The notes under the pieces: model-generated | Database searches by the model: none | Told to the model about the DNA's origin: nothing | The model's input: only the letters and a program-made list of their open reading frames with translations | Assembly (NCBI GenBank): GCA_905178155.1 | Contig: CAJINV010000011.1 | Span: 3,071,144 to 3,135,143, forward strand | Direction of reading: 5' to 3' | DNA from: Amoebophrya sp. A120 | Lineage: Eukaryota; Protista; Dinoflagellata | DNA length: 64,000 nt | Translations under genes and position numbers: made by a program | Shown here: positions 3,515 to 64,000 of the stretch, piece by piece | How the letters are laid out: each line of letters starts with the position of its first letter | How positions within the stretch are numbered: position 1 is the first letter of the stretch

Positions 3515-4255
3515 GGTGAAGAGGTCGTCTTTCGGGTGGATGAACTAGTTGGTCCGCTATCCTCGTGTGACCCCGAAGTCAGTAGACTTCTGCTCCAGCG
3601 CGTCTCTACTCTGTGCGAGCCTTTTTCGAGCTGAAGAGAGGATCGATGCTGGTAACACGAACCTAGTATCTTCCAGCGCGGCGCCCAAGCTGAGGTTCCT
3701 CACTGGCAAGCAACACGGTCAAAAGCAACCGTATCACTTCTGCGGCGCGGACGGGGGTGATGGCGGTAGTATTCGGTGGTGAACGTCATCTTGTCGGATT
3801 AAAAAGGTAGTTTTCCTGGCAACGAAGATACCAACAGAGCCAATAGAACAAAAATCTCTACTTGGGCAGACCGCGGAACAGGGGGGAAAGAGATAGACGA
3901 GACGAAGATCATGATTGAGCGGGGGACCGATCGTGACAACTGGACAACCGAAATTTTTTGTTCCATATAGACAACGAACAATAGACCTACTCATGTGTTG
4001 CAGAGAGAACAGAGAGATGACACCTGCTGGCCAATAAACGCAACAATCATCTTCGTGCTCGCGCCGTTTCTCTTTCTAGTAGCTAATTTTCCTTTCGGAC
4101 CGTGGAAACAGTGGTGGAAACGGTTCATTCAAGCGTGAAACGAAACTGTCCAATTCGCAACCTAGCTTTCTCGTCAAAACGCCCGCGTTTCTGTTTGTTC
4201 ATATTCATCCTCGATCATGCACTTCTGCATGCTACGGGTACAACCAAGGAACCAT

Positions 4256-6194: not shown

Positions 6195-6672
6195 CGTTCT
6201 GCTGCTAGCTTCTATGGTTAACTTTCAGTTTCATGTTCATCGAACAGAGGTTATTAGATGCGGAAGTGTCGACGTCAAGATATTTGTTCACCTTCTGCGT
6301 TAGGACTAGTCATTTTTTCTGTCCCAGTGCATCGCCCCAAAGATAGACGCCGAATAGATGTAAGTAGCTAACCCCTTAGAAGGGCGCCGAATCCTATTTT
6401 TTTGTGAATGTGTGCGATTGGTAAGGCTCTACGGGCGAAACGAACGACGAATAAGTGGAGGCCTCGTTAATACGAACAACGTGCAGGCCGCTCTCTTGTC
6501 AAGATGCCTCGGTCTACGACAGAAGCTGGCCAAGCGATTACGAACTACGATGCGTGTACTCGGTGCGTTGTCCTACTGCGACGCAACGTCGATTCTACAA
6601 AGAATGCAGTTTGTCTTGCGACTTTTTGCATTAGCGCTAGTTTTTCATACTTACAGTACTGCGTTTCTTACA

Positions 6673-11441: not shown

Positions 11442-14400
11442 TTACCCGGATTTCTTTCCTCCTTCCGCAAGTCCTTTCTGCGCGCTTTTTGCGGCTTTGC
11501 GGCGTCTCAGCTGCTCTTCGGCAACCTTTTCGACAGTTTCGTCGCGGCGCAGCTTTGCGATTTCTTTCTCCAACGCCCGGAGTCTATCCGCCTGGGCGTG
11601 CACCTGCGGCGCTTGGTGGGTGACAATGGTCTCCGTGACCCGTTCGACCCGAGTGGTGACGATATCGAGCCGCTGCATGCGCTGCTGCACCATCAGGGTC
11701 AGCACCGCGATAATGTCTTGGTATCGGATACCTGTGATAGGGGAGGGTAGAGGAAGATAAAACGGAATTGAAAATTTTTCAACATTTATTTCATGTTGTA
11801 ACTACATCACAACAGTTCCACCCCGAATGCAGATCACTAGATGGAGTACGAGCATTTGTAAATTATTTGCGAAAAAAAAACTCAGCACAATACCATATTT
11901 ATCCGCAGCGGTTTGGGTCACCAACGTTGGGTACAACTCGCCCAACTCTTGCGCGATGAACCCGTAGTAGAGTTGCTTCGCTTCCACGTCGCGCTTCAAG
12001 TGGTAACTCACCGGCTTCAAGGCCTTGAACTCGAGCAGAGCCTCGTACATCAGCGCTTCCTTTTCGGTATCGAACCTCGTGGTGACGTTGGTTCCGTTCG
12101 GGAGGTTCTCGGTGACGACCCAGGTGGTGGTTGGTCTTGGTTGGTCGTTCGCTGCATGTATACTATGTTGATCTGGTACCGCGATTTCCGTCACGTTAGT
12201 GTGCACTGGCCGGAGGTCGGTCATGTTGTAGTGTAAGTCGACCGGGTAGGACAGACGCCTGTTGATGAAGATTTTTACAAGGATGGACGATTGTCTTGTG
12301 TAACAAGTTTGCATCAAGACGGCAAAAAACGAATTTCAGTATGCTATTTGGAAACCACGAGGGTCAGGATGGTGAAACTGGTTTTCTCTTTATCCCTGAC
12401 CCTGACACAAGAAACCAAAATCCTATAATGCTATCTCATACGGTATGATACCTGTGCCTGATTTCCGCCAGACTTTCGTACAACGGTCGGACTTCTTTCT
12501 TGAGCCGTTGATCGGAGATGGTGGAAATCACGCTGTCACTGGACCAGGTGCCGTGGAAGATATTACTGGCGATGTGGGTTCCCGCCACGGTCACCCCGCT
12601 GTAGAACGAGATCGCCCGGCCAGAAACTGAACTCTGCTCGCGCCACATCTCCCACGCAATGGGGGACGTCTGTTTTTTAAATTAGGATTGGGAATAAATA
12701 AAAACTCATCGCAAAGCAAATGAGCCCATAGCTATTTCTCTACTTCAGCGGCGCAAGAAATGACAAAAAATGTAAGTAGTAGGCACAATAAAGATCGTTG
12801 TCGTTCAAAAAAAAGCATTATACCCCTTCCTTGAAGTAGTTGGCTTGTTTGTTGGAATTGAAGTAGACCGGGACGCTGTTGGCACCGCCGAATACGACAC
12901 TTCCGGCAACACTCAAGCCTGATTTGGAATTTTCGAAAAATCACGATCAGTCTATCAAAATGGACATCAACTTTTGCTGTCTATGCATGAGATATTTTTG
13001 TGCTCATGTCCATGTGACTTGAGCATTACAAGAATTTTCAAAAAAATCAATACTGCTTCCCAGTCTTGCAGCGCTGCGGACGGACAGAGCCGATCCAAGA
13101 TTGGTAAAGTCCAGGACTGAGATGTTGCCTCCCAGCCTTGCGAAGCTCCGGAGCGACAGGGAGGAGCCCAGGGTAACTGTTTTTTTGTGGATTTTTCAAA
13201 AATTTTTGTGTCTTGACTATCGGGGACGAGTTTGTTTCGACAAAGATGAGCAAAAGAATGACTCACTGTAAAACTTCTTTATCCGTTCGCGAGGAGTAGA
13301 TGATGGAACAGATACACATCAAAACAACGACTTATTAGTACGTGATCTCAGGATGCTGACGGAGCCCGACGTGGTCGTGGGACCACCCACCACGGAGACA
13401 GCACTTCCTACCCGCATGTACGCCCTGACGGACAGCGTGGACCCCAGCGCCAGGAAGTTGCACACCGAAGACCGGCTGCCAATACGTTTCAAGCCTCGCA
13501 CGGAGAGGGTGCTGCCCAGCACCGCCATATTTATCACGGACAGGCACTTGGCGCCACTGTTCATTTTTTGTGTTGGGTTTTTGTCTTCGAGTTTTTTCAG
13601 TAGCACGCCGAATACATTTGCACTGGTGAAAAAGCAACAACTAAAGCTAGGCAAGGGCAACAACAAAAAAATCATCAATACATTGACTTTGCTCGGAGGC
13701 TGAGCGCGCTGCCCAATGTGCATGAGGTGATGACGGACAGGCCGTGGCTATTCAGCGGACCGAGACCATTAACGGACAGCGTAGAGCCCAGACGCATTAC
13801 AGCGCGCATGGATACACCTGATTTTTGAAAATTTTTTCAAATGCTACTCCATTTGCATCGAAATAACTACCGCCTGTACGCAATAATTTGAATGCTCTGA
13901 CATGATCAGCAGAATGTTCTAAAAGAGAAGCCTAACAAAAACAAAGAAAACGAATCCAGTTCTTTAAATACTTGATCCGAGCGACACGTAGTCGAGCACG
14001 GACGCCCTGCCCCCGAAGCGCATGGAACTCCGGAGGGACATGGCGCTGCCGAGGTTCAGGTTCTCCATCAAGCTGAGTCGGGTCATGTGCGACGCCCCGA
14101 TGTTGAGGCAGGTTGACGTTCCCGTCGCGCTGACTCCGCTCCCCACGCGGCAGAAGGACCGGACGGAAAGAGCGGATCCGAGTTCCAGGAAATCAACCAG
14201 ACTCATTCTATCGGCGATTTTCATGTACCCGCGGAGGGAGATCGTGCTGCCGATGTGGGCGAAATTCGAGGCACTAATCGTGCTGCGCACGTTCAGGGCC
14301 TGTGTGGTTTTTATTTTGGAAGTGCTTTGTGACTGATAAAGTGAGCTGGTTGGACTTTGGTTTCATTTTCATTTCGCAAGCGCATGACATGCGTAACAGA

Positions 14401-17400
14401 TTTCATTCGTGAATTGGAGAATCAGCATGTGCATGACAAAATCAAAAAGCATTCTTAAATACCGATCCGAATTTGCCGTGGACGACCGAAAGAGTCGATC
14501 CGAAGCGGGCGAAGCCACGAACGGAGACCGAGGAACCCATGTTCACGAAGTCCAGGACGGACATCGTGCCACCAAGCCGGTCTGTTTTGTTTTTGTGATA
14601 ATCGTAGTACAGCATGACAGTTGCAGATCTGGTTTCTTACCTCATTCAGCATTCATAAAATCCAGTTTTTTCCTTATAGGGCGACGCATATAATTCGACA
14701 ACAAAAAAGGACAAGTCAAGTACTCATGGTCCTCAAGGACAGGGACGATCCGAGACTTGTGGCGTCGAGAACGGAGCATCGACTCCCGAACCTCGTATTT
14801 GTCCTCACAGAGAAGGAAGAACCTGTTGTAGTAGTTTATTTCGGGATATTTTCATCAATTATTGTATGTATTCTTTTTTGCAGTCAAGTTCATCAAGGAT
14901 AGAAATTCCTCAAACAAAGTTGCATAGAAAACGCGCAAAAATCATTGCGATTGCTATTCGATAAGCTGAAAGAACGTGAGAAGAAAACATCGAAAGAGCT
15001 GAAAGTTCTATACCCATTTGGACGAAGTCCAAAACCGACAGCCCCATTCCGCCCTGCAGTCTCGTCGCAGCCCGCAGCGAAATGTTGGAGCCGAGGCTGC
15101 AGAACTGGAGGATGGAAAGCGTGTTATGTAATGTACTGCACCGCCGGACGCTCAAGGCCGATCCCATGTGAGCCGCGTCCATCACACTGATGAAGGAGCT
15201 GCACTTCACAAACTGCCGCAGGGAGAGGGCGGAACCTGTGGGGTTTTTGATTTTTGGTTTTGATGTTGTATTTTATCTGTAGGTATGGCGCAAGCGTAGC
15301 ATTCAGATTCTTCTTCTAGAGTCTGGAGTCTTGATCTATTTAACATTTCGTGGCAGTAGAGCGAAGTCTGTAACTGCATTTTTGAAACGCGGAAAGAACC
15401 GCTCAGCCTTCTCTATCGATGAAAACAAAAAAACCACGTACCCATGAGCACTTCGTTGATGACCGAGAGCTTGTAGACACTCCCCAGCCCGCCGCAGGTC
15501 GAGCAGCCCCGGACGCTCATGGTAGAACCGCAGCGACTGAACTGTCGTACCGACAGCGCGGATCCCAGGCTGGCGAAGTTTATGACGGAAGCGCTGCTAC
15601 CAATCTTCACGACTTTCCGCATGGACAGCGAGGAGCCCAAATGCGTAAACGACAGGGTCGAAAACGCCGCTCCTGGTTTGACGTGTCCACGCAGGGAGAA
15701 GGAGGAACCCAGGGCAAGGTGGTCGAGAACCTGTTTGTGGAAGTTTGTTTTCAAGTTGTTGTTTTCATCTGGCACTAGTGCGAAATGAAGTTTTGCTCTT
15801 TGCACAACTCAGTGAACAAGTATGGTCGTGTTTTTAGTTTTTCTTGTGTTTTGCATTTACTCATGATCTTCAAGTTTCGAAAATTATACCGAGATTCTGC
15901 TGCCGAATCGGACGAAGCTCCGGACAGACAGACTGGATCCCAGTTCGACACGGCTGTGCAGGGAGCACTTGCTCATGAACGTGATCTTCCCCGTGGTTCC
16001 AGTGCCCGCGACGCTGAATGCGGATCCGAGTCTCGCAACCGAGCGCAAGCTCATGGAGCTGCCCAGGTTGACGAAGCTCAGGACCGAACATTTCCAGTGG
16101 ACTCTTGACATGCCGCGAATCTGTTTTGCAATGTTTTTTGGAGGTTAAAAGCTTTTTGCAGGAATACTACATGGTGGACAACGTTTTACTTCCATGCCAC
16201 AAGCTCATTCGCCTAGACAGCACGACAACATATCTACATCTACTCATCATCATTCAACAAAAAAAGCAAAAAAAACAATCAGTACGCTGAAAGTCGATCC
16301 CATACTGAGGTAGTCCAGGACCGAGCCTCGGGAACCCAACCGCGTCTGCCCGTTGCTGGACAAGCAGCTGCCTAATCTCGCGAACTGCCGCACCGACAGA
16401 TTTGAGCCGAGGGTGACGAAGTCCAGGACCGACATGCTGCTCCCCATTCGCGCCATAGACCGTAACGACAGAGTCGACCCCAGGTCCGCAATGTGGACGA
16501 CGGATAATTTGTTCACCTTGCCCTCATGCGACCGCACGTAACCGGTTACACTCAAACTCGAGCCGCACCGGACAAACGAACGGATGCTGACCGTGGAACC
16601 GAGGGCTAAGAAGTCTAAAATAGACAATCTGTCGCCCAATCTGCTCTGGCACCGGATGGAGCAACTTGACCCTAACGCGAGGAAGTTCAACACGCTGGAT
16701 CTCGACCCGACATTGCAGACTGACCGGACGGACAAGCTACTCCCTAGATGCACGAAGCTCAGCACCGACATTTTCCCCGGCATCGCACGGATGCCCGCGC
16801 GGATGGACATGGAGGATCCGAGCGTCAATGCGTCAAGTAAGGAGACACGATTCCCCGCTTTCATGTAGCTGCGCAAGGATAGGCTGGATCCGAGGTAGAT
16901 CGAGTCCAACACGGAGAACTTGTTGCCGCACTGCATAAGATTCCTTACGCTCAAACTACTCCCGCAAGACACCGCGTCGATGACAGACAATCGGTAGACG
17001 GATCCCAAAAAGGATGCGCTGTGGACGGAACACGACGACCCGATCCGGATGTAGCTGCGAATGGACATGCTGGACCCGAGGTTCGCGAAGTTCAGCACGC
17101 TGCAGTAGCTGCCGAACCTAGCGTGGCTGCGCATGGATAAACACGAGCCGAGAACAACCGCGTCGAAGATCGACAAAGTGGAGCTGAACCGCGCGAAGTT
17201 CCGCAAGGAGACGGAGCTGGCCATGTTGACAAACTGCAGAACCGACAACGCGTCGCCGAGTCTACTTTGTGCCCGGATGGAGAAAGAGGAACCGAGATGC
17301 AACTGGGAAAACACGGAGCACCGACTCCCCAGTCTATTACTCCCCGCCACACTGAAACCGCTGCCGCAGCGGGCGATGGCGCGGACGGAGAGTGCACTGC

Positions 17401-20400
17401 CTGTGTTGACGAAGTCGAATAGTGAGGTAGTTCCTCCCACCCGGATCAATGACCGGAGCGAGAAGCTGCTACCCAAAGACGTGGCGTCTAATACGCTCAT
17501 CCTTCCGCTCATCGTCAGAGATCCGAGGATAGACGCGGACGAGCCGACGCGCGCGTAGTTCCGGAGAGACAAACAGCTGCCCATGGCGATGGAATCGAAC
17601 AAGGACAGCCGACTGCCGAAGTTGGCGAAGCACCGTAAGGAGCAACTGCTTCCTAATGTCAGGCGCTCCAGCACCGACATGGAGGTCACCGAGCCAGTTC
17701 TTAGACAACCGTGGACGCTGAACGCAGAGCCGATGCGGACGTAAGATCGCAGAGACATAGTGGATCCGAGCTGTAAGAAGTCGAAGGTGGAGAATCGCGA
17801 GCCTGTTCTGGTAAAACTCCTGAGCGACAAACCACTTCCGAGCGTGCTGCTGTCCAGAATCGAGGCTTTGGTCCCCAGTTTTCCGAAGCTACGTAAGGAG
17901 AACGAGGAGCCCATGTGCAAGAAGTCCATAATCGACATTCTGCTACCAACGTTGGCGTACGACCGTAACGAGAGTGCGGACCCGAGGTTGAACGTATCCA
18001 GCACACTGCAGTTGCTGCCGAATCTCGCCGAGTTGCGGACCGACATGGCGGATCCGATGTTCATGAAGTCGAGAACGCTAAGTCGGGAGCCGAGTCGCGC
18101 TTGCGATCTCAACGAGACGGAGGAGCCGAGCTGCACGAAGTTCATGACGGACAGCCGCAAAGCCGACCCGACAAAGTTCAAACCGACCGAGCTGTAGCTG
18201 TCGCCCGCCTTGATGAAGTTGCGCATCGAGAGGGAGCTGCCGGCCTCAACAAAGTTGAGGATGGAAACTTTCTCGCCGAACTTCGCGTACCCGCGGACGG
18301 ATAAGGCGGATCCGAGAGAGCAGTAACTCAGCATCGAGAAGTAAGTGCCGAACTTCATGCCGCACCTCACGGACATCGCGCTGCCAATGTGCAGGAAGTC
18401 GAGCACCGAGGCGCGCTCCCCGACGGCGACGGCGGAGCGGATAGAGAGACTCGACCCGAGGATGCCGAAGGAGAGGACGGAGAGTGCGCCACAAGCCCTG
18501 CTAGTTCCAACGACGGATAATCCGGAGGAAATCTTCCCGATGGATCTGCAACTGACCGAACTGCCCAGTTCTAGAAAGTTCAACAAGCTACATCTCGACC
18601 CCGTCTTGGAAATCGCCCGGACAGAGGTGGAGGACCCGATGGATAAGAAATCCAGGACTGAGAGCCTCTTCTGGCAGTTCAGCTTCGCACCACCCGCGAG
18701 GGACAAACTGCTGCCGACCCGCGTGTAGCCACGGATGGATAACGCACTGCCAATGTGCAGGAAGTCAACGATGGACAATCTACTACCCATGCGGACGGAG
18801 GACCGGAGGGAGAACGACGACCCGACGGTGGCAAATTCGAACACCGAAATGCTGCTGCCAACGCGCGCGAACGCCCGGAGCGACAGAGACGATCCGAGGC
18901 CGAAATAATCCGCAAGGGAGGTTTTCCCGCCCGACCTGCAAGTCGCCCGTACGGACAAACCGCTGCTGATGCAAACGAAGTTCAACACCGACAACCGTGA
19001 GCCGCACCGAGCCGCCAGCTGCCGCAGAGATAAGGAAGACCCGAGCGTCACCGCATCCAAAACGGACAACGCATTGCTGTGTCTAGCAAAAGTCCTTAAA
19101 GACATGCTGCTCCCGACCGACGCCGTGTGCATCACGGAAAGTTGCAATGCGGAATTGCACGCGAACAACCCGACGCAAGACACACCGGAGTGCATCCTGG
19201 AGAACGACCGGATGGACATACCCGAACCGATGTTCGTCACGTGCAGCACGGACAGAAACCCGCCGACCCGCGCGGTGGACCGTAAGCTGACGGAAGAGCC
19301 CAAATGCGTGTAGTCCAGCACGGAGAGATTCCCGCTCATGGCGAGATTTTTCCGCAAAGAGAAGGTGCTGCCCAAGTGGAGGAAGGACAAAACGCTGATC
19401 TTGTTCGCCAATCTAGCCGTGGACCGGACGGACAGCGAAGATCCGACGTTGACGGAGTTGATGATGCTCATGCCGATGCCGCGGCCGGCCAGCTGCGAAC
19501 TGCCGAGTATCGCAGCGCCGAGGACGGACACTGCGGACGCGTACCGGAAGCAGCTGCGCATAGAGAGTGCAGATCCCACGGACAGGAAGTCCAACACCGA
19601 CGCTCGGGACGACATCCGGCTGGATGTTCGGACAGACAAGTTGCTGCCGAGACTGGCCATGCAGAGGACACTGCACTGGCTCTCCACGCGCGCGTTACCT
19701 AGAATGGAAACGCCACCAGACATGCGGACAGCCGCCCGGATGGAGATACTGCTGCCGAACTGCGCGTAGTCGAGCAGCGACATGCTGCCGCCGAGGCGGA
19801 CGGTGGACCGGACGGACATGGAACTTCCTAATCTCACGTACTCCATCACGGAGAGGCGGGAATACATCTTATCCGTGTACACGTGGCCCTGCATGCTGCA
19901 CGCGTTCCCGAGACGGATGAACTGGCGGATGCTCATGCTAGATCCAACATCGACGGCTGACAAAACCGACAACGCCGAGGCGAACCTTGCTAAAGACCGC
20001 ATGGACATGCTGGATCCGGCCTTCATCCAACCTAAGATGGAAATCTGCAATCCACCTTGCCTGCCATCTCCACGCACCGACAACCCCGAGCTCAAACGCG
20101 CGAACGCCCGGATGGACATTGCGGAGCCGAGATTCAAGCAGTCGATGACGGAGGTCCTTGCCGCGAGCTTTGAGAAAGTTCTCAAAGATAAAGAGCTGCC
20201 GTAGGTCTTGAAGTGCATCACGGACAAGGCGTACACCGAGCCGGTCCTGACAATGCTCTTGACGGAGAGACTGCTGCTGCAGCGCATGTACTGGCGCACG
20301 GAGAGTGCGGACCCGAACTGCACGTAGTCGAGAAGAGACAATCTCGACGACGAAACGCATTTTTGCCGAACCGACAAGCTCGAGCCGACGGTCACAAAGT

Positions 20401-23400
20401 TCAGCACGCTGGTGTTACACGTTGGTTTTCCGGTCTGCAAAGATCCGACGATGGAGTAGCTGCTGCCGAGTTTCGCGATCGAGCGGATCGAAATCGCGGA
20501 GGAGATGGTCGTGAAGTCTAACAACGAGACCGCGCTGCTGAGTCTCGCGAAGCTCCGGACAGACAGACTGGAGCCGCAATTGAGCATGTTCATCATGGAC
20601 AAGTTGTTCAGCGACCCCTTCAGGCAGAGCAGGGACACGGAAAGAGCGGACCCAATCCTGCAGTAGTGTCGGATAGACATCGAGGAGCCCATGCCGCAGT
20701 AGTCCAAAACGGAGAACTTCGTGCCCGCGCGGAAGCTGGCCCGAAGAGATAAACTGCTACCAAGCGAGACGGAATCCATGACGGACAAGTGGTTTCCGAC
20801 GTTAAATCTTCTACCCCGTAGAGACAAAGAAGATCCGAGGTGGAGCTGCTCCAGGACGGAAAGGTTCTCGCCGGAGGTCACGCTACTCGTCACCTGCATT
20901 CTTTTCCCGGTGCGGACGAACGCACGGCAACTAATCGTGCTTCCGAGTCTGGATTGATCCAACACACTCAACCCCTTCCCTGCGCGGACGACAGATCGGA
21001 TGGACAATGAGCTCCCCAAACCGACGAAGTCCATCAGAGAGGTTTCCTTGATGCCGACCCGCGCCGCGCCGATCACGGTTAAGCCCGACTGCAGCCGGAG
21101 GTACGAACGGATCGACAAGGTACTGCCAAACATCGCGTAGTTCAAGGTGGAGCAGGATTTTCCCATCCGCGCGATCATTCTCAAAGACAACGAACTACCC
21201 AACGACGCCGTGCCGAACAGGGACATCTGCGGCCCGACTTCAGAAAAGGAATCCAAACTAAGCCGGTTTCCGCTCGCATACAACCCCGCGGTGGCTACCG
21301 ACAACGTCGAACCCAGACGCGCGTGCGCCCGGACGCTGATGTTGGACCCGAGGTGGACGAAGTCGAGCACGCTCGCCTGCGCGCCGAACCGGATGAGAGA
21401 CCGTAAGCTCATGCTACTCCCCAAAACCGTGTTGTCCAGAACGGAAATACTATGGCCGAACCGGGCGAAGGTCCGGAGGGAGAGAGAGCTGCCCATGCCG
21501 AAGAACCCGACGACGGACAATTTTTGCACGGAGCCGATCTCCACAACGCCGTGGACCGACATACTGGACCCGAGTCGCATCGATTGGCGAATGGATAACG
21601 CGCTGCCGCAGTGCACGAAGTCCAAAATAGACATCGCGGAGCCAACCCGCATTTTGTTCCGCAAAGAGAGAGTAGACGACAGCATGACCGCGTCAACCAC
21701 ACTAATCGCGTCGCCGAACTTGGTCATGCGCCGCAAGCTCATGGTGCTGCCGAGGTAGACGGCGTCTAGGACTGACACCCCGCAGGCCGCCCGGATTAAA
21801 CTGCCGGCCGCTCTGACCGAGAGGGACGACCCTAAATGGAGCTCGTCGAGGATGGAAAGACGCGATCTTTGCATCACCTGCTTGTTGATCGAGAAGCTGC
21901 TGCCCACCCGCAGGTACTGCCGGATGCTCATCTGACTCCCGCAGTGCGCGAAGTTCAACATGGAGCAACAGCTACCAAACCGGCTGACTTTTCGAACCGA
22001 TAACGAGGACCCCAAATGGATCTGCTGCAGCACGGAGAGCGTACCACCAGCGTTCGCAGAAGCGAAAATCGATAAGCTGCTACCTTTCCGCGTAAACGCC
22101 CGGGTGGACAAGCTGGATCCGACGTTGACGAAGTCAATCACGGACAGCACGGATCCTAGTTTGGCGTACGCGCGGAGCGAGAGACTGCTGCCGATGTGTA
22201 GATAGTCAACAGCGGACATCGCGAAGCAGGAGCCCGCGGCGAGAAGCCCGCGGACGGAGACACCAGACCCGATTCGGCAGAAGGATCGGAGGGAGACAGA
22301 AGAGCGCAAGAACGTGAAGCTCAAAACGCTCATCTTCCCCTGCATCTGCCCGACGCCGCGGATGGAAATGCTGGACCCGAGCGCGAGGTAGTCTAATACC
22401 GACAATCTGTCTTCCATCTTCGCCAAGCCGAGTGCGCTGCAGCTGGAACTCAATCTACCGACGGATCTTACCGAGACCGAGGAAGCCAAATGCGTGAAGG
22501 TCAATAACGACAGCGGGCCGCCGAGTCTGCCCGTGCTGCGGAGAGATAGTGTCGACGCTGCAGTTGTGAAGTTGACGACGGAGCAGTTTTGGCAGGACCC
22601 AATCGCCGTGCTACCGATGCAGGACAAGCCGGAGCCGATTCGCGCGAACTTCCGGATGGAAAGAGAACTACCCAAGTTGTTGAAATTCAAGACGGACATC
22701 GTGTTCCCGAAATTCACCTTCTGTCCGCGCAGCGAGAAGCTGGAGCCGAGATGTACAAAGGCGAGCACGGACGTACTTTTACTACTTTGCACAAAACAAC
22801 GGCCGAACACGGAGGTACTGCTGCCGCAGCGCGCGGACGTCCGGATGGAGAGTGCGGATCCCATGTGGAGGCAATCGAGGACGCTGGCGCGACAGGAGGT
22901 TCTGACGAAGGACCGAATCGAGATGCTGGAACCCATTGTTAAATACTGGATCACACTCATCTTCATGGTCGACCCGTGGGTATGTAACCCGAAGGCAGAC
23001 AAACTCGAGCCGCACCTGGCGAACGACCGGACAGATAAGCTTGATCCCATGTGGCAGAAGTTCACGAGCGACAAGGCAGCGCCGCCACGGATGTTAGACC
23101 TTAAGGACAAGCTGGAGCCCAGGCTCGCGAACGACAAAACGCTCATCTTCTCGCCAAACCGGGTTTGTGCATTCGTGGACAGACCGCTTCCGATGCGGGC
23201 GTATTGTCTCACGGACAAAGAGCTTCCGAGCAACACCATGTTCAGGGTGCTGCACATGCTACCGACCTTCATGCAGGACCGCAAGGACAAAGCCGACCCT
23301 AAAGACACGCCGTCCAACACGGAAAAGCTCGTCATGCACCGGACTGCGTTCGCTTCGCTGAAGACGGAGAACGCCGACCCGAGTCGCGTGAAGGTCCGGA

Positions 23401-53400: not shown

Positions 53401-56400
53401 CCGAACCGAGCCGGGAGATCCCGTAGATCGAGACACACGACCCGAGTCTAGCGAAGCTTCTCACACTCAAGCAGGAAGACGTTTTCACGTTCCCCAGCTC
53501 CACGCCAAATTCGTTCGCGCGCCAGACTTCGTAGTTGCCGCATTCCGCCTTGACCTTTCCGTACACGGATAGAGCCGACCCGAACCGCATGTACGCCCGC
53601 ACTGACATGGTGGAACCGAGGGTGAGGAAATCCAGGACGGATAAACTCGACCCCAGCCGCTGCATGCCATACACCGACGCCGAGCTGCCGAATTTTAAAA
53701 ACCCTCTCAGCGACATCGCAGAGCCGAAGTGCGTGTAATCCAAAACCGAAATGCAGCTCCCCACCCGCATCAGTGCGAGAACGGACAATTCCGATCCTAA
53801 CCTCGAGACGTTCCTCAATGACAGCGCCGTTCCCAGCTGCAGAAAGTCGCACACGCTCATGGGTTTCGCGAGTTTCAAATGGTGGAACAGCGACATGGCG
53901 CTGCTCTGGCGGAGGACCGTGCGGAGAGACAACGAACTTCCCATGTGCAGGTAGGAGATGATCGACATTCGGTGTCCCAGCTTCGTCGTCGTGAACACGG
54001 ACATGGTAGATTGTGTCCGGATGAAGCCCCGCAACGAGCAGCTCGACCCGAAGTGCGCCCAGGACGGCATGGAGAATTCCGCCCCCAATCTCGTCTGCGA
54101 CATGATCGACATCCGGCTGCCAATCCGCACATTGGCCCGGACGGAGAGGGCAGAACCCAGATACGTGTAGCTCATGGTCGACATCTTTTGCGAATTCACG
54201 TTGAAGTTCGTCAGTAAGGACAACCCGGAGCCCAACCTCGTGTAGCTTCGGCAGGACAAAGTGCTTCCAAGAGTTAGCGCTTCCCCGACGGAGAACGGCT
54301 GCTCGAACAGCACTTTTCCCACCAACGAGTAGCAGGACCCGCAGCGGAGGAAGCCCCGGAGCGAGATCGCAGAGCCGAACGTGACGTAATTTAACACGGA
54401 GATGTTGCTGCTGATCCGGTTCCAGGATAAAACGCTCAGATGCGACCCGATGCGCGCGTAATTCCTCAAGGACAGCGAGCTGCCCATGGCGAACTGATCT
54501 AGGATGGAAACGTCTTTCGCGAACTCCGTTCTTGTGATCACGGAGAGGGTAGAACCGAGTCTGGCGTACCCGCGTAGCGAAAGCGCACTTCCCAGCGTGC
54601 ACCACTCCGAGAGGGACAACGCTTCGCCGAGCGTGCACTTTCTGATCACCGAACACGTGGAGCCGATCCGGAGGTAGCTGCGGAGGGATAACGAGCTGCC
54701 GAGTGCGGTGTACGTCGCGGTGGAAAGATGTGAGCCTAACCTGGTTAACCCCAACACAGACATCCCCGACGCGCAACGCAGAACGTTCCTCAATGAGAGC
54801 GCGGACCCGAGCACCGTGAAGTCAAACACGGACAAGCTAGATCCGGCTCTGACAAGCGATATGACGGACAAAGCGGATCCAACTCTACTGTACTGCCGCG
54901 TGGACAAAGAAGTCCCAAGCACGCAGAAATCGAACAAGCTCATCCTCGCCTCGATCCTCAGCTGCGGGCCGAAGACCGAGAGGTTAGAACCCATTCGGCA
55001 GTAGTGGCGGAGGGACAACGTGCTGGAGATCTCGCAGCAGTCCAGGACCGATAGCATGCTCCCCATCCTGCTCATCCCGTACACGGACACCGCGGAGCCC
55101 AGTCTCGTGTAGCTGCGAACACTCAACGCAGAGCCCAAGCCGAATAAATCGACCAAGGAGCACGAAGAGCCCAGTCTCGCCACCCCGTACACAGACAAAC
55201 TGGACCCGAACCGCATGCAGTTCCTGACCGAAACGGTGCTTCCCAAAATGAGGAAGTCGAGCAGGGAAATCGTCGACCCCAGGCGACTCATCCCGAACAG
55301 GGATAAAGAGCTCCCTAGTCTCGCGCAGTTCCGGATCGACATTGAACTCCCGATGGCGCAGAAGTCGATCAAAGACAGTGCAGAACCTAATCTCGAAACG
55401 CCGAAAACGGAGAGACTAGAGCCGAATCGCGCGCAAGACCGGACGGACACGGTGGAGCCAATGTGCAGCATGTCGATTAAGGAGATTGCTGATCCAAGCC
55501 GGTTCATGCCGTACACAGAGCAGGAACTCGATAGCCTCCCGAAATTCCGCAAAGAAACCGAGCTGCCCATCGTCGCGAAATCCAGGCAGCTGGTCGCCGT
55601 GCCGATCCGCGCCATGCCGTAAATCGAGCAGCTCGAACTGAGTCTCGCGTAGTTCCTTAGGCTGACGGACGAGCCGATGCTGACGAAATCCAATATCGAG
55701 ATGTTGGAGCCGATCCGCGCAATGCCGAACGTCGACATGGAGGAACCAAGCCGGGAGAAACTCCGGCAGCTGATGGACGATCCGAGACTGAACATGTCCA
55801 GCATCGACATGCAGCTGGCAACCCGTAATAGCCCGTAGACGGAGAGACTCGAGCCGAACCGGGCGAAGTTTCTGCAGGATACCGTGCTGGCCATCATGAC
55901 CGAGTCGAGCACCGACAACTGGCTGGCGAGTAACGCCGTGCCGAACACGGAAATGCTGCTGCCGAACCGCATGTAGGTGCGGAGGGACAAAGACGATCCG
56001 AGTTGCAATAGATCCAGTATGCTCATGTTGGAACCGAGTCTTGCACTCCCGTAGAGGGAAATGCTGGATCCGAATCTGCAGAACCCGCGCAGGCTCATCG
56101 AACTACCCAAACTCGTGGCGTCCAAAACGGAGAGCGAGCTGCCGCACCGGAGAATGCCGTAAACACTCGCCGCAGATCCTAGTCGCGCAAAGCTGCGGAC
56201 CGACAAAGCGGACCCTAAATGCACGCTGTCGAGGACGGAGAGGTTGCTACCGTAGCCCAGGCAACGTAGAATCGACAAGGAACTTCCGAAGCGAGCGTAG
56301 TGCCTTAAGGACACCGAGCTCCCCAGCTGCAGCATGTCCAGCACGCTCAACGTGCTGCCCGCCCGCATCTGCGACATCACGGATAAAGCGGACCCGAACC

Positions 56401-59400
56401 GACTGTAATGCCGCACGGATAAAGTGCTCCCCAGCAGCAAGCAGTCGAGCACGGACATCTGGGACCCGAGTCTGCACATTCCGTAGACGGAAACGCTGGA
56501 ACCGAATCTGGCCCACTGGCGACAGGACAAAGACGAGCCGAGCTGCAGCCAATCTAAAACTGAAACCCCAGTTCCGCCCGTCGCGGAGCCGATCCGCACG
56601 GTTTGCAAGACCGACAAGTTGCTCCCGAGCCGCAAGTAGCTTCGCAGGGACATGGAAGATCCAAATTCGGTCATCGCCAACACCGACAGATCGCTGCCGA
56701 ACCTGTTTTCTCCCACGTTCCTCAGCAAACTCAAGGAGCTCCCGATTCGCATGTACCCCCGCAGCGACAAGCTGGATCCGAGGTCCGTGCGGTCGAGAAC
56801 GGAGAGGTTTCCACCTAAATATTCCTTCCGGTAAATCGAAACTGCCGATCCCATGCGCTGGTAACTGCGGAGCGACAAGGTACTACCCATGTTCACGAAG
56901 TCCAGCACCGACGCGGAGGAACCCAGGCGGCTCAATCCGTAGACGGACAAGCTCGATCCGAACCGGCTGTACGCACGGAGACTCATCGAGCTTCCCAGCT
57001 GCATCCAGTCGAGCACGGAGTAGACCGAACCCAACGTCTCCCGGCTCATCACGCTCAGGCAGCTGCCAAGGCGGATGGTCGAGCGGAGCGACATGTTGCT
57101 GCCGATGTGGATGACATCCAACACAGACAAACTGCTGCCCAGCGTCATGACCCCGTACAGACTGTACGCCGATCCCATCCGGCAGAAGTGCCGGAGCGAG
57201 ACAGTGCTGCCTAAGTGTAGGAAGTCCAGGACGGATAAAGACGAGCCGAATTTCGTGCTGTGGAACAAGCTGAAGCCACTCCCGATTCGGAGCATCTGGC
57301 GGACCGACATGGAACTGCCCAGCTGCACGTAGTCCAGGATGGAAATCCGGGATCCGCACCTCACCTGGTCGAACACGGAAAGGCAAGACCCGCAACGGAG
57401 GTAGTGCCGGATGCTCAAACTTGATCCCAAGTACACGTTGTCCAACACGCTCAAGCACGTTCCCAGGGTCAGTTTCGCGAACACGGACACACCTGATCCC
57501 ATTCTGGAGTAATGACGCAAGGACACGGAGGATCCCAGCACCAGCATGTCCAGCACGCTTGCTACACTCCCTAACCGGCAGCACCCGTAAAGCGAGAAGC
57601 TGGAGCCCAAACGGACGAAGGAGCGGAGGGACAAAGCGGATCCTAATTGCAGCATGTCGATGATGGAGAGTTGTGAGCCCATGCTGGTCTTGCTCATCAC
57701 CGAGATCGTTGACCCGAACCGCATGTAGTGCCGCAAGGACAACGTCGTGCCGCACTGCACGTAGTCCAGAATCGACAAATTCGAACCCAGCGTCACTTTT
57801 CGGAACACCGAAATCGCGGAGCCGTGCCGGATGTAGTTCCGCAGGGAAAGTGACGACCCGAAGAACGCCGCGTCTAGGATTGACAAATTACTCCCTTGCT
57901 GGAACTCGCTGTAGACACTGCAAGCAGACGCCAGTCGGATGTAGTTCCGGAGGGACAAAGAGGTCCCTAAACGCGTCGCGTCAAGAATGGACAATGTCGT
58001 GCCACACTGCATTTTGCTAATAACGGAGTAGCAGGACCCGAACCGCATGTAGGAGCGTAAAGACATGGACGTTCCGAGGTGCAGGCAATCCAGAATCGAC
58101 GTCGTGGACCCCAATCTTGCCCAGTTGATCACGGACACAATGGATCCGAGTCGCTGGTACGACCGGAGCGACAAAGTCGTCCCGAGGCTCACCGCGTCCA
58201 GAACCGACAATGCCACGCCGGTGTTGCCGCACCGGAGCTTGTCAAAAACGGATACCGTCGACCCGTAGCGGAAGTAACTGCGCATAGACAAGGAACTCGC
58301 TAACTGCGAGAACTCCAGCACGGACAGGCAGCTGCCGAACCGCGTTCCCTCCATCATGCAGCTCATCCCGCTTCCGTACCTCAAATAGCTCCTTAAAGAC
58401 AAGTTCGACCCCAAGTTCACCATATCTAAAATCGACACCCGGGACCCAAACGTCGCGCGACTGCAGACCGACAAGTTGCTTCCAAACCGGAACACCGCCC
58501 GGACGCTCATGGCGGAAGATAATTGCGTGAAGTCCAGCACGGATAACACACTCCCCAGCCTGCACTGCGAGAAGAAGCTGGTTGTGGACGCACACCGGAG
58601 GTAATGGCGCATCGACAAGCTTGACCCCAAGTTCAAGCAGTCGAGCAAACTGAGGGTGCTCCCGAGTCTGGCTAAGCCGAAGACAGAGATGGAAGATCCA
58701 CAACGGATATAGCTTCTCATGCTCAAACAGCTACCCAGCTGCGTGCTGTCCAAAACCGACATGGTCACGCCGACGCGGAGCGTGTTGATGATCGAGGTGG
58801 TGGAGCCGAAGCGGACGTAGTTCCGGACGGACAAAGAACTCCCCAGCCCGACGAAATCCAGCAAGCTAATCGTCGTCCCCACGCGGCACCAATTCATCAC
58901 GGAGACCACAGAGCCCAGTCGCTTGTAACAACGGAGGGACAACGTCGATCCCTGGTTGATGAAGTCCAATATCGAGGAACTAGACCCGAGTCTCGCAATC
59001 CCGTACAGCGAGATCGTGCTGCCGAACCGGACGTAGGACCGAAGGGACAGACTCGACCCGAGCTGGAGCGTATCGAGTAAAGAGACGTTCGACCCCATTC
59101 TCGCCCATTGCAAGACGGAAATCGCCGACCCCAGTCGGATCATGCTCCGGAGGGACAAATTGCTGCCGCAGTGGAGGATGTCCAACACACTCAACGTACT
59201 GCCCAACAGCGTCATGCCGTAGACAGAATGCGCGGACCCGAGGCGCGTGTAGGATCTCATGGACAAGGTGGAGCCCAATGGTAAAATGTCCAAAATCGAG
59301 ATACTCGACCCCAATGTGTACATTCCGTAGACGGAAAAGCTACTCCCAAGCCGGCAGCAGTGTCTTAGCGACAGAGAACTGCCCAACTGCGCGGAATCCA

Positions 59401-62400
59401 AAACGCTCAGATGGTGCCCGAGCCGCACCTTTTCAATCATGGACAACGTCGACCCGATGCGGAGGTAGTTTCGGACGGACAAACTTGACCCGATATCCGT
59501 GAAATCCAACACGGAGAAGCTGTAGGTCTGGTCCACACGGGAAATGATCGACACGCCACTCCCGAGACGCAAGTAACTCCGCAGCGACAGGCACGACCCG
59601 AGGTAGGTGCTATCTAAGACGGAAATCCCGCTGCCCAGTCGGAACATTCCGTAGAGACTAACACTAGAGCCAAGCCGGGAAAAGTTCCGGACGGAGATCG
59701 CTGACCCTAATTCCAGCAGATCCAGCACCGACAAGCAACTTCCCACTTTGCTGATTCCGTACATGGACAAAGTGGACCCCAGTCGCGTGTAGGATCTTAC
59801 CGAAATCGTGGATCCGAACTGGATGAAATCGATTAAACTGCAGTTCGACCCGAGTCTCGTCATCCCGTAGATGCTCATTGCGCTTCCAACCCGGCAGAAG
59901 TTCCGGACGGAGATGCAGCTGCCCATCTGGACGTAGTCCAATGTTGACAGCGCGGATCCGAGTCTCGTCGCGCCGAACACGCTGATCGTACTCCCCAACC
60001 TGGCGAAGGATCGGGTGGATAACGTTGACCCCAGCTGGCAAAAGTCGAGGACGGACACCGCGGACCCGAGTCTGCTCATCCCGTACACGGAGACGGTGGA
60101 AGAGAGTCGCATGTAGGACCTGACGGACAATGTGCTGCCTAAATGGCAGATGTCCAGGATCGACATGGAGGAGCCCAACTTCGAGATTCCGTAGACACTC
60201 GCTCCGCTGGACAGCCTCGAGAAGTACCGCATGGAGACGCACGAGCCGCAATGTAAAAGGTCCAGCAAAGATAACGACGATCCCAGCCTTGTCATGCCGT
60301 ACACGCTGCAAGTGGACCCGAGTCGCGCGTAGTTCCGGAAGGACAAGCTGGAGCCGAGCTCGAGCACGTCCAGAATTGACAAATTTGACCCTAACCTCGT
60401 CAACCCGAACACGGACGTGCTGGACCCGAGCCGTAGGAAGTACCGCATGGAAACGGAAGAACCTAAGTGCATCAGGTCCAACACAGAGACCACCGACCCG
60501 ATCCGGTTCATCCCGTAAATTGACATGGAGGAGCCAAGTCTCGCGTAGTACCTGACGCTGATACTGGACCCCAGCTCCAACATGTCCAACACCGAGATAT
60601 TCGATCCCATCCGCTGCATCCCATAGACGCTCATCGAACTACCGAGGCGGGCGAAGTTCCTGACGGAGAGATTCGACCCCAGCCAGAAGTAGTCGATTAA
60701 CGAGACAGACGACCCTAATTTCACCGCGCCGTAAATCGACAAAGACGAGCCGCACCGTGCGTAGGTTCTGACGCTGATCGTGGAGGAAAGACTCAAGAAG
60801 TCGATCATGGAGGTCGCGGAGCCCATTTTCACCATGCCGTAAACCGAGAGCGAACTTCCCATCCGGGCGAAGTTCCGAACGGAGAAGGAACTGCCGATCT
60901 GGATCTCGTCTAACACGGACAAGTTGCTACCCAATCTCGTCATTCCGAACATGCTGCAAGTGGAGCTCAATCGGAAGAAGTTCCGGACGGAAAGACAGGA
61001 TCCGAGTTGAATGGTGTCAATCAGCGACAGATTCGAGCTCAACCGCGTGATTCCGTATACGCTCAGCCCGCTGCCGAGTCGCAGCATGTTGCGCAGACTG
61101 AAGCTGGAGCCGAGCTGCAGCCAGTCTAGTACCGACATGGAGGACGCCGTGTGGATTATCCCGTACACGGATAAGCTGGAGCCTAACCGGTAAAAGTTCC
61201 GCATGGAAATCGACGAGCCGATCTGCAGGTAGTCCAGAACCGAGCACTGGGAAGATAATGATACCGCGCCGAACACGGAAATCGTGCTACCGACTCGGGA
61301 CCAGGCTCTGCACGACATCATGCTGCCGACGTGCAGGAAATCCAGCACGGACAAACAGCTGCCGAACTTGGACAGACCGTAGACGGACAAGCAACTGCCG
61401 ATCCGGGAGAAGTTCCGGACGGACAAACTGCTGCCGATGTGCGTGCAGTCCAGGATGGAAAACGACGATCCGAGCCGGAGTAACCCAAACACGGACAGAC
61501 TGCTCCCGATCCGGAGGAAGTTCCGCAAAGACATGCAACTACCCAACTGCAGTGTGTCGAGCACGGACAATCTGCTTCCCAATAACGTCGCACCATACAC
61601 CGAGAAGGAGCTCCCGAATCGTGCGAAGCTGCGGACCGAGATGGAGCTGCCCATGTGGAGGATATCCAAAACTGAGATGTTCGACCCGAGTCCCCGAATC
61701 CCGTACACCGAGCAGCTGCTCCCCAGTCTGACGAAACTGCGCACGGACATGGAAGATCCAAGCGCCAGCATGTCGATTAGGGAGAGCATTGTGCCAATCC
61801 GCGCCATTCCGTACACGGACAACGTTGATCCAACTCGGCAGTAGTTCCGCACCGACATGGTGCTTCCCACGCCGAGGAAATCCAACAACGACAGGTTACT
61901 CGCGAGCCGGTTCAGCCCGAACACGGAGAGGGAACTTCCGATCCGCAAGAAGTTTCTCGTGGATAAAACCGACCCGAAGCTGTTGAAGTCCAAGGCGGAC
62001 AAAGCGGACCCCACTCGCGCCATGCCGTAGCAAGACATGGAGGATCCCAGTCGCGCGAACCTGCGGAAGGAGAAGGAAGAGCCGAGTTGCACGTAGTCGA
62101 GAATGGACAAACAACTCGACACTTTCCCGATCCCGTAGACGGACATGGAGCTTCCCAGTCGGCAGAAGTACCGCGTGGAAATGTTCGACCCGACCTGGGA
62201 AAAGTCCAAGGTGGACAACATCGAACCCAGCCGGATCTGCCCGTAGAGGCTGCAGCTACTCCCCAGTCTGGAGAACGTTCTGGTGCTGAACGCGGAGCCC
62301 ATGTTCACGAAGTCCAAGATCGACAACGCGGACCCGAGCTTGGAAATGCCCCAGATGGACACGCAGCTGCCGAGTCTGGCGAACCCGCGGACGGAGCAGG

Positions 62401-64000
62401 TGGAGGACAAAGTCAGTAAATCCAAGACGGATAAGCTGCTGCCCATCCTCGCCATTCCGAACACGGAGATCGAGCTGCCCAACCGCGCCATCGACCGCAA
62501 AGAGAAACTCGACGCGAGATGCGTGAAGTCCAACACCGACAAGGAACTCCCGATCCTGCCCATGCCGTAGAAGGAGCAGGTGGATCCTAACCTTCCGAAC
62601 GTCCGGAGCGATATGGTCGACCCGAGCGAGTTGAAATCGACGACGGAGACGAAGGAGCCCAGTCGTTGCATTCCGAAGACGGAGATAGAAGACCCGATCC
62701 TTGCAAACATCCGTAATGACAAGCAACTCCCGACCTGGAAGAAGTCCAAGGTGGATAAACACCGGTTTGGGTCCCTGCAGTCGAAGTGCCTTTGCGCCAA
62801 CCTCGCGCCGCCGAAGATGGACAGAGTTGATCCCATTCGCGCGTAACCGCGTAAGGACAGCGCCGACCCGATGTAGCAGGAATCCAACACGGAGCACGGG
62901 TGGAATTTCGATAACCTCGCCAGCCCGTACAGCGATAAACTCGACCCCATCCTGGTGAACTGCCGGACTCTCGCGCCGCCGCCCCGCACATTCCCGCGGA
63001 ACTGGAAGTGGAAACCGTTCTGGTTGTTCGCGAGAATGGTGGATGGGAAGTACGCCATCACGTACCGGGGGTTCTCGATCGCCTCGCCGAAGGTCACCGT
63101 GCCGGTGTGGAAGGTTTCAATCCGATTCCACACTGTCGCGCTTGTCACCGCGAAATCGTGTGTATAATACGCTTGGAAGTAGTTCTGGATGTAGTCCGTG
63201 TCCGCGCCGGTCACTTCGAACCCAAACGGGTGCTGATCCCGTAGGTCAAAAGTCACCTCAAACTGCCCGTTCCCAGACACCGCGACACCGTCGGTCGCCG
63301 TCCCCCCGATCGGGTCCGGGAAAATGATGTCGTTTAAAGTCCCGCCGGAAAGCGACGCGACGCCCGACTGAATGAAGTCGGTGATCGACAGTTTTCCCGT
63401 GAGAGGTCCGCCACCGAGTCTTGTCGGGAACATCCCTCGGCCGAGATTCACGAAGTCCAACACGGAGAGACTCTTTCCGATGGTTGCGACCCCGTAGGCT
63501 GAGAAGGAAGAACCCAGTCTGACAAAAGACCGCAGCGTTAAGCTCGATCCCATCTGACAGAACGACATCACGGACAGGCTGGACGCGAGCTGCACGAGCC
63601 CGTAGTTGGACAAAGCCGAGCCTAACCGGAAAAACTTCCGAACGGACAGTTCATTCGCACCGACGCCGAAGTCCAAAATCGACAGGCAGGACCCCAATCG
63701 AGCGCATTTGTAGCAACTAGCCGAGCTGCCGACGCGGAAGAAGGACCTTAACGAGACAGAAGACCCAAAAGTCGCAAAATCCAAGCAGGATAAACACGAC
63801 CCCAGCCTCGCCATCCCGTACAGAGATAACGCGACGTTGCCCCGTTGGTGCCTGCTCGCGGCGTTGTTGTGAATGGAATACGCCGCGCCGATTCTCGCAA
63901 AGTGCCGGACGGAAAGGCTGGAACCGAAGGAAACGTAATCCAACACGGACAAGCAACTGGACAGTCTCGCCGTGCCGAACACGCTGATCGTAGATCCGGC
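11442..64000 (-). CDS. Giant repetitive beta-fibre-like protein with C-terminal Peptidase S74 (intramolecular chaperone) domain; 5'-truncated, at least 16,725 aa, 15 exons in window
   Basis: Exons: >64000-50831, 50563-16286, 16120-15890, 15730-15442, 15235-15014, 14822-14724, 14581-14463, 14299-13972, 13817-13682, 13556-13342, 13176-13054, 12918-12824, 12669-12452, 12258-11894, 11731-11442. All junctions keep phase and continue the repeat or the S74 motifs. The frame is open to the window edge; the track's 'M' at 63982 is a GTG valine inside a repeat. Confidence 0.88.
11682..12516 (-). other. Peptidase S74 / ICA autocleaving chaperone domain (spans the last 3 exons), followed by a coiled coil to about 11500
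   Basis: ISTI-SDQRLKKEVRPL (Ser codon 12514-12516, Lys at +5) ... ALKPVSYHLK ... YGFIAQELGELYPTLV ... YGIRYQDIIAVLTLMVQQ, then ...ADRLRALEKEIAKLRR. All hallmark motifs of the phage endosialidase/tailspike chaperone appear in the expected order. Confidence 0.9.
11732..16285 (-). other. Cluster of 13 short canonical introns (125-206 nt) at the 3' end of the giant gene
   Basis: Introns at 16121-16285, 15731-15889, 15236-15441, 14823-15013, 14582-14723, 14300-14462, 13818-13971, 13557-13681, 13177-13341, 12919-13053, 12670-12823, 12259-12451 and 11732-11893. All begin GTA[C/T], end CAG and are AT-rich. Confidence 0.85.
50569..50830. mobile_element. 262-bp MITE-like introner, family A copy 3, splitting the giant ORF
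   Basis: TIRs tatgcattgcaaatatgtctgggtctggaagatt / aatcttccagacccagacatttttgcaatccata. TSD gctga at 50564-50568 and 50831-50835. Contains in-frame TGA (50768-50770). Removing 267 nt gives KLGSNFS-VQGRMNF, a normal repeat unit. Confidence 0.93.
62975..63439 (-). other. About 155-aa non-repetitive globular insert in the fibre, discoidin/F5-8 type C (galactose-binding-like) candidate
   Basis: The repeat is interrupted by RGMFPTRLGGGP...QFEVTFDLRD...FQAYYTHD...WNRI...VTFGEAIENPRYVMAYF...FHFQFRG, flanked by Gly-rich linkers. The motif order resembles the discoidin xIDL / FxxPxxARYV / ExxG pattern. Confidence 0.45.

Follow-up and report, generated by a model that had tools for sequence, protein, structure and literature searches.

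A giant gene of Amoebophrya sp. A120 joins a dodecapeptide-repeat shaft to an S74/ICA domain and probably encodes a TLP-12-type glycofibril precursor

S74/ICA domains, such as those of the phage K1F endosialidase, the phage T5 L-shaped fibre and MYRF, trimerise, nucleate intertwined triple beta-helices and cleave themselves at a Ser-Lys dyad. The closest described relative of the gene reported here is the TLP-12 glycofibril, whose structure was determined by cryo-electron microscopy (cryo-EM) at 3.0 Å in the CryoSeek preprint (bioRxiv 10.1101/2025.09.30.679562). As described there, TLP-12 is a trimer of GSxxSx7 dodecapeptides in which the glycine at position 1 is invariant and positions 2 and 5, mostly serine, carry large O-glycans. 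The triple beta-helix is interwoven and triangular; within each repeat, residues 4-6 and 10-12 form short strands that occupy two of its sides, and the rise is 9.6 Å with a twist of -11.3 degrees. The authors found the motif in Amoebophrya proteins of ~20,000 aa, with ~150 candidates in six alveolates. Their representative, A0A8J1ZHD7 of strain A120, is described in the same preprint as 19,853 aa long, with 1,263 GSxxSx7 repeats and an ICA domain at its C-terminus; the function of the fibril is left open by the authors. Here we analysed a stretch of 64,000 nt from contig CAJINV010000011.1 of Amoebophrya sp. A120 (hereafter the window), which contains most of a gene with this architecture on its minus strand. 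Transcript contigs join the repeat shaft of this gene to its S74 exons, and the product of the locus is probably the precursor of an extracellular glycofibril of the TLP-12 type.

In its sequence, the present gene has every feature that the preprint describes for the TLP-12 family, including a C-terminal ICA domain on a chain of ~20,000 aa. The protein family, its fold and its ICA domain have thus already been published (10.1101/2025.09.30.679562) and are not new. What follows concerns the structure and transcription of the present gene, its shaft, its paralogues and the way in which its product might be assembled.

Transcript structure and the S74/ICA domain

Coordinates are those of the window, and window+n denotes n nt past the window end on the same contig. 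The 5′ part of the gene starts past the window end and the stop codon is at 11444-11442. A mechanical list of open reading frames (ORFs) contained two giant open frames on the minus strand, 16250..50614 (11,454 aa) and 50768..63982 (4,404 aa), the second of which leaves the window and reaches a full length of 7,502 aa when the adjacent 10 kb are added. The whole-gene model comprises ~19,980 aa (177 + 7,461 + 11,430 + 909). It begins with a signal peptide and a conserved domain, continues with a shaft of ~1,275 G-S-x-x-S units of twelve residues that contains a unique 150-aa insert, and has the S74 domain at its C-terminal end.

RNA reads were placed on the region 11200-16700, where the raw RNA reads of 2026 numbered only two, and transcript contigs were available from runs X1 and X4, which represent two samples. 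Results showed that the contigs (11,085 nt from X1 and 4,766 nt from X4) skip 13 segments of this region, all 13 of them with CT..AC ends on the plus strand, that is, GT..AG on the minus strand. Once the 13 introns were removed, a scripted frame check found the frame of the giant ORF open through 13 small exons as far as the stop codon. The link between shaft and chaperone is therefore shown, because the transcript contigs join the repeat frame in phase to the S74 exons, and the repeat shaft and the S74 exons are one transcribed gene.

A different explanation of these contigs would be that the S74 exons form a separate downstream gene and that the spliced contigs are chimeric across co-directional neighbours. 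Contigs are indeed not single molecules, and Amoebophrya genes sit in unidirectional clusters, as the genome paper reports. However, the 13 consecutive GT-AG junctions keep one frame, which contains neither an in-frame stop nor a new start context, the same splice structure was found in both samples, and the order of repeats and S74 domain recurs in three paralogues and in environmental proteins. We consider a separate S74 gene extremely improbable.

The two giant frames are separated by an element at 50575-50824 whose terminal inverted repeats (50824-50797 and 50602-50575) are complementary at 27 of 28 positions, and excision of 249 nt at ~50575-50824 preserves the frame between the giant ORFs. 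According to the A120 genome paper, two thirds of the introns in this genome are non-canonical, and introners with inverted repeats are found. From its sequence, the 250-nt element between the giant frames appears introner-like, of the type described for Amoebophrya. The parts of the gene, from its 5′ to its 3′ end, are as follows.

window+9374..9916, minus strand: N-terminal exon (exon 1), starting with MRIVAFFSLLTEIAQA followed by FVLVSNTGAITLLGPIDIDP; one GT-AG-compatible intron precedes the giant frame
50825..64000, minus strand: in-window part of giant exon 2, whose open frame extends upstream to ~window+9,276
62948..63514, minus strand: non-repeat insert of ~150 aa inside a 189-aa slice, the sole sizeable non-repeat part of the shaft
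50575..50824, minus strand: introner-like intron between the giant frames, with 28-nt terminal inverted repeats and approximate splice sites
16286..50574, minus strand: giant exon 3, ~11,430 codons of mixed 24-aa (a-c) and 36-aa (a-b-c) units, described below; donor at 16286/16285 from transcript contigs
16120-15890, 15730-15442, 15235-15014, 14822-14724 and 14581-14463, minus strand: small repeat exons 1-5 of ten, from transcript contigs
14299-13972, 13817-13682, 13556-13342, 13176-13054 and 12918-12824, minus strand: small repeat exons 6-10 of ten, from transcript contigs
12452..12669, minus strand: exon that encodes both the neck (HGTWSSDSVISTI) and the N-terminal segment of S74, including SDQRLK at 12516-12499
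11894..12258, minus strand: exon with a ~75-aa family-specific linker and the S74 core, from LKPVSY to YYGFIAQELGELYP, which gives the PF13884 match
11442..11731, minus strand: last coding exon, with IRYQDIIAVL and then a charged helical tail; stop codon at 11444-11442
11200..11441, minus strand: start of the 3′ untranslated region (3′-UTR), beyond which a transcript contig extends ~1.4 kb further downstream

The introns that separate the ten small repeat exons (12824..16120) are of the GT-AG type and 125-206 nt long. Intron spread along the gene is very uneven, since all 13 GT-AG introns (125-206 nt) lie within the last 4.8 kb and the upstream 57 kb, of which ~48 kb are in the window, contain only one introner and one further intron. 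G+C content is ~58% in the coding part and ~45-50% in the flanks. The extension of the run X1 contig by ~1.4 kb beyond 11200, in the region 9773-11441, would represent either a 3′-UTR of ~1.7 kb or read-through toward a co-directional ORF at 8417-9283.

The S74 domain was searched exon by exon against Peptidase_S74 (PF13884), whose curated Pfam cut-off is 22 bits. The core exon 11894-12258 matched with 29.3 bits over profile positions 15-57, and with 31.2 bits in a six-frame search of the genome (115,520,608 bp). All of the C-terminal peptides that had been quoted when the domain was first noticed are present, namely HGTWSSDSVISTISDQRLK, SDQRLK (12516-12499), LKPVSY (from 12020), GFIAQE (11963-11946) and IRYQDIIAVL. 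The Ser-Lys dyad motif S-D-x-R-x-K is found at the start of the domain as SDQRLK, aligned to profile positions 1-21, and in four of four genomic S74 loci this motif lies one exon upstream of the core and after GSxxS repeats. In the paralogues it reads SDRRVK, SDKRRK and SDVRLK, and their Pfam S74 scores are 32-44 bits. A profile of the C-terminus built from the four paralogues and compared with Protein Data Bank (PDB) chains matched 6f45, a long tail fibre distal subunit (E 9e-6), 8jov, a tail fibre (5.5e-4), and MYRF, 7dc3 (0.016). In the PHROGs database the core exon resembled sequences near the C-termini of tail-fibre families. By homology with characterized ICA domains, cleavage is predicted before the Ser of SDQRLK, with release of a fragment of ~239 aa.

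As the transcripts show, the S74 domain sits behind the repeat shaft. The helical tail behind this domain can be aligned, by means of the paralogue profile, to the corresponding tails of 6f45 and 7dc3. A crude heptad test of the tail was not significant, with 143 of 500 shuffles reaching the observed score, and a coiled coil in this tail is plausible by homology only.

The original prediction, made from the letters of the window, had proposed a single spliced frame of more than 52 kb and more than 16,700 aa. This was confirmed, with ~16,730 codons of the gene inside the window and with splicing documented by transcripts at the 3′ end. Its identification of the S74 domain is borne out by the core exon, which exceeds the Pfam cut-off, and the contigs from two samples uphold its assignment of the S74 exons to the gene of the shaft. 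As to the coiled coil that it placed at the C-terminus, the helical tail was recovered by homology but heptad periodicity was not. That annotation would break up the locus and overlook the connection between shaft and chaperone, as it expected, is doubtful; a 19,853-aa A120 model with repeats and ICA domain is in UniProt, according to the preprint (10.1101/2025.09.30.679562).

The dodecapeptide shaft and its predicted fold

Residue-identity autocorrelation along the shaft was 0.25-0.44 at lags of 12, 24 and 36, against a baseline of 0.08, with a lag-36 identity of 0.44 in giant exon 2 (50825..64000), and the modal GS-to-GS spacing was 12. With G1, S2 and S5 as the anchor that defined the repeat alignment, we counted 1,096 exact GSxxS units with the consensus G-S-S-L-S-V/L-R-x-F-x-R-L. 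A position-specific scoring matrix (PSSM) detected 551 + 691 + 33 = 1,275 units in the whole gene, compared to 0-7 in shuffled sequence. Positions 4, 6 and 12 are occupied by L or V and positions 7 and 11 by R, and hydrophobic residues dominate positions 4, 6, 10 and 12. Hydropathy autocorrelation was 0.37-0.43 at lags 6, 12 and 18, a hydrophobic beat of six residues. The ~1,300 repeats originally proposed hold as 12-residue slots in the window, but recognisable motif units there are nearer 1,050 by a proportional estimate.

In the N-terminal third of the shaft, three 12-mers, a (GSSLSLRSFARL), b (GSSLSVYGMARL) and c (GSSLSVLDFLHL), make up a clean super-repeat of 36 aa, and 76 a-b-c patterns were counted for giant exon 2. 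In the rest of the shaft, a-c units of 24 aa are mixed with a-b-c units. Three 12-mers would correspond to six triangle sides, the interval at which a chain could return to the same sheet and strand type; the super-repeat may have this structural meaning or may be just a unit of duplication.

The shaft is thus a tandem array of 12-mers in which, as in TLP-12, glycine occupies position 1 and Ser or Thr positions 2 and 5, and its sequence is compatible with two short strands per repeat and six residues per triangle side. Pfam found no family in 3,000 aa of the shaft, and a phmmer search of the shaft against PDB sequences gave only non-significant matches to gp12 and to LpxA-type proteins (E 0.05-0.4 for the latter) and did not find TLP-12. 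In PHROGs, the shaft matched phrog_5353 (3.4e-11) and the tail collar fibre family phrog_910. An AlphaFold2 (AF2) monomer model of a 216-aa shaft segment, computed with 63 in-register segments aligned, was all-beta with a 36-residue periodicity and a pLDDT of 53.9, and Foldseek found no match to this model in the PDB at E <= 0.001.

These data bear on a second possible architecture, in which the shaft would be a single-chain beta-solenoid of the hexapeptide-like type, with 18 residues per turn, and the S74 domain would merely bundle three solenoids. The hydrophobic period of six residues and the all-beta, periodic monomer model are what a solenoid would give, and similarity to such proteins appears both in the weak phmmer hits to LpxA-type sequences and in the faintest Foldseek matches, which are GlmU, LpxA and LpxD. 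However, none of the matches to LpxA, GlmU and LpxD is significant, the triple beta-helices that ICA domains are known to nucleate are intertwined, and the cryo-EM structure of the same dodecapeptide, as presented in the preprint, is interwoven (10.1101/2025.09.30.679562). The low confidence of the AF2 monomer is also expected, because an obligate interwoven trimer should model poorly as a monomer. Taken together, we judge a single-chain solenoid improbable and an interwoven trimer of the TLP-12 type the more probable fold of the shaft.

Several observations weigh against a TLP-12-type glycofibril precursor. Two of them are the low pLDDT of the shaft model and the lack of Foldseek matches below the threshold. 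The exon 12452-12669, which carries the dyad, reached 13.8 bits against PF13884 (positions 1-21), below the cut-off when taken alone, and phmmer searches with single S74 exons found no match among PDB sequences. Read support covers the 3′ end of the gene, and the joins at ~50.6-50.8 kb and between exons 1 and 2 are modelled. Cleavage, glycosylation and secretion of the present protein are predictions from the ICA literature and from TLP-12. Finally, the TLP-12 fibril of the preprint was found in a freshwater pond and has not been assigned to an organism, and identity of fold with the present protein is proposed from motif and homology.

Four paralogues and their environmental relatives

A 360-aa segment of the shaft matched the genome at four places only, on contigs C11 (the present gene), C13, C3 and C2, and the genome contains four S74 loci. 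In the C13 paralogue (1786878-1874245), one open frame runs without interruption for 26,593 codons (79,779 nt), which to our knowledge would be among the longest exons known. The genome paper gives 79,744 bp for the longest exon of strain A25, near the length of this frame. The C3 paralogue has an open frame of 18,586 aa. The largest is the C2 paralogue (12897002-13002304), whose repeat-bearing frames are spread over 104 kb and add up to ~29,700 aa, with many introns and 4,276 N of assembly gaps between them. The four paralogues thus encode ~20,000-30,000 aa each, ~98,000 codons in sum, and the three others also have the repeats followed by the S74 domain.

Directly upstream of the array, all four paralogues have an N-terminal exon that encodes a hydrophobic signal-like segment and a domain of ~160 aa with the motif FVL(V/I)S..G.I(T/S)LLGP(I/V)DIDP. 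ESM Atlas gave weak leads for this domain to phage tail-fibre clusters (T4 gp36 and gp9/10 N-terminal), with scores of ~0.9 but few shared features. The 150-aa insert (62948-63514) is unique to the present paralogue and is found once in the genome. Neither Pfam nor PHROGs matched the insert; ESM Atlas gave a weak, sub-threshold lead to F5/8 type C (discoidin-like; 0.80-0.83), and an AF2 model from the single sequence was unusable (pLDDT 36.6).

Relatives were also found outside the genome. A HMMER search against 1.84 billion cluster representatives returned 1,338 proteins at E <= 1e-3, of which 48 at E <= 1e-30, and the longest among the 150 best listed environmental matches had <= 4,226 aa. 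The pattern [ST]DxRxK followed by G.IAQ[ED] occurred in 25 of the 154 environmental sequences examined, with lengths of 330-2,800 aa. Most of these 25 proteins also have GSxxS repeats and a few have almost none (P0039, P0063 and P0134); many of them are probably C-terminal fragments of giant genes. Two environmental proteins, P0001 and P0003, have a Pfam S74 match, and dyad motifs in the environmental kin include SDKRLK and SDRRLK. To judge from these sequences, the combination of repeats and ICA domain is common in environmental data.

In view of the phage-like matches, the genes might be viral fibre genes that were endogenised from a giant virus or a phage-like element and do not serve a cellular structure. 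Both ends of the protein give such matches, the shaft and C-terminus to phage families (phrog_5353, phrog_910 and the tail-fibre PHROGs) and the N-terminal domain through its weak Atlas leads. Such an origin is nevertheless hard to reconcile with the presence of four copies scattered over different contigs, all of which have a signal-like segment as well as spliceosomal introns or introners. In addition, the genes are transcribed, their 20,000-30,000 aa are far above the size of any viral fibre, and no viral neighbours were seen, the flanking ORFs (window 3-9283) having no Pfam family. We give endogenised viral genes a very slim chance and retain the view that the family serves to build a cellular fibre.

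Proposed assembly, role and comparison with known systems

In the assembly that we propose for the TLP-12-type precursor, three chains would enter the secretory pathway and their C-terminal ICA domains would trimerise, nucleating an intertwined triple beta-helix that zips up from the C- to the N-terminus. Each 12-mer would add a rise of 0.96 nm and supply two strands, six residues long, to two sides of the triangular core. The ICA domain would cut itself before the Ser of SDQRLK, so that the ~239-aa fragment is freed, and a shell would be built up from large O-glycans on S2 and S5 of every repeat. A fibre ~1.2-1.5 µm long would result, because at 0.96 nm per 12-mer, as in TLP-12, 1,275 units would give a shaft of ~1.2 µm and a repeat region of ~19,200 aa one of ~1.5 µm.

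This scheme retains the homotrimeric beta-helical filament with a C-terminal self-cleaving chaperone of the original prediction, which is supported, as a prediction, by the S74 match, the dyad in four paralogues, the transcript link from shaft to chaperone, the profile matches to ICA chains and the TLP-12 trimer described in the preprint. The length changes. The original prediction had put the part of the shaft inside the window at 0.65 or 0.2 µm; a value of ~1.25 µm, twice the larger of these estimates, is expected instead, because each 12-mer of TLP-12, by the preprint's 9.6 Å rise, spans two rungs. It had also missed that the two conserved serines correspond to the O-glycosylation sites of the thick glycan shell reported for TLP-12, and would be glycosylated likewise in the present protein. 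What speaks for such glycosylation here is the conservation of these serines together with the signal-peptide-like N-terminus.

The cellular role of the fibre is speculative and could be that of a surface or flagellar hair, or of an adhesion fibre, of the free-swimming infective stage. A more specific idea, which we regard as unlikely, is that the fibre is a host-contact or flagellar hair of the infective dinospore and that the four paralogues, one of them with a lectin-like shaft module, set its length and glycan display and contribute to host range. If this were true, the paralogues would help to determine which hosts are open to a parasite that keeps dinoflagellate blooms in check. The four genes are among the largest protein-coding genes known, and the proposed assembly would mean that a phage fibre-assembly device has been reused by a eukaryote for micrometre-long, sugar-coated fibres. 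The present locus, with its transcript structure, signal peptide, predicted cleavage site and paralogue-specific insert, offers handles for locating the fibre in the parasite by antibodies, proteomic peptides and stage-resolved expression.

Among known systems, the left-handed beta-helix enzymes LpxA and GlmU share with the shaft the hydrophobic period of six residues, and their similarity in sequence and fold is weak and non-significant. They differ in that they are single-chain solenoids of few turns that trimerise side by side, and we claim no membership of this group for the present protein. MYRF, a membrane-bound transcription factor of metazoans and Dictyostelium, resembles it as a eukaryotic protein having an ICA domain with S-D-x-R-x-K, and gave the weak profile match to 7dc3. 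In contrast to MYRF, the present protein lacks a DNA-binding domain, and its ICA domain, which is not followed by a transmembrane segment, would release a structural fibre and not a transcription factor.

Phage tail fibres and tailspikes, such as the K1F endosialidase, T5 pb1 and the distal subunits of long tail fibres, likewise place an S74/ICA domain that has a Ser-Lys dyad behind a beta-helical shaft, and the present family is similar in sequence to 6f45, 8jov and the PHROG tail-fibre families. Compared to these, the present protein is 20-100 times longer, is eukaryotic and has introns and a signal peptide. Its shaft would be a regular scaffold for glycosylation, and a ~75-aa linker splits its S74 domain.

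The closest counterpart remains A0A8J1ZHD7 as the preprint describes it. It shares with the present gene the G1/S2/S5 signature, a length of ~20,000 aa, ~1,270 units, the C-terminal ICA domain and the strain, A120; the lengths differ, 19,853 aa against ~19,980 aa in the present model, in a comparison made by description only. On the same descriptive basis, the present gene may be A0A8J1ZHD7 itself or one of its three paralogues. Beyond what the preprint passages mention for this family, the present gene has the 150-aa insert, the 36-aa a-b-c super-repeat and, at its N-terminus, a predicted signal peptide followed by a conserved domain.

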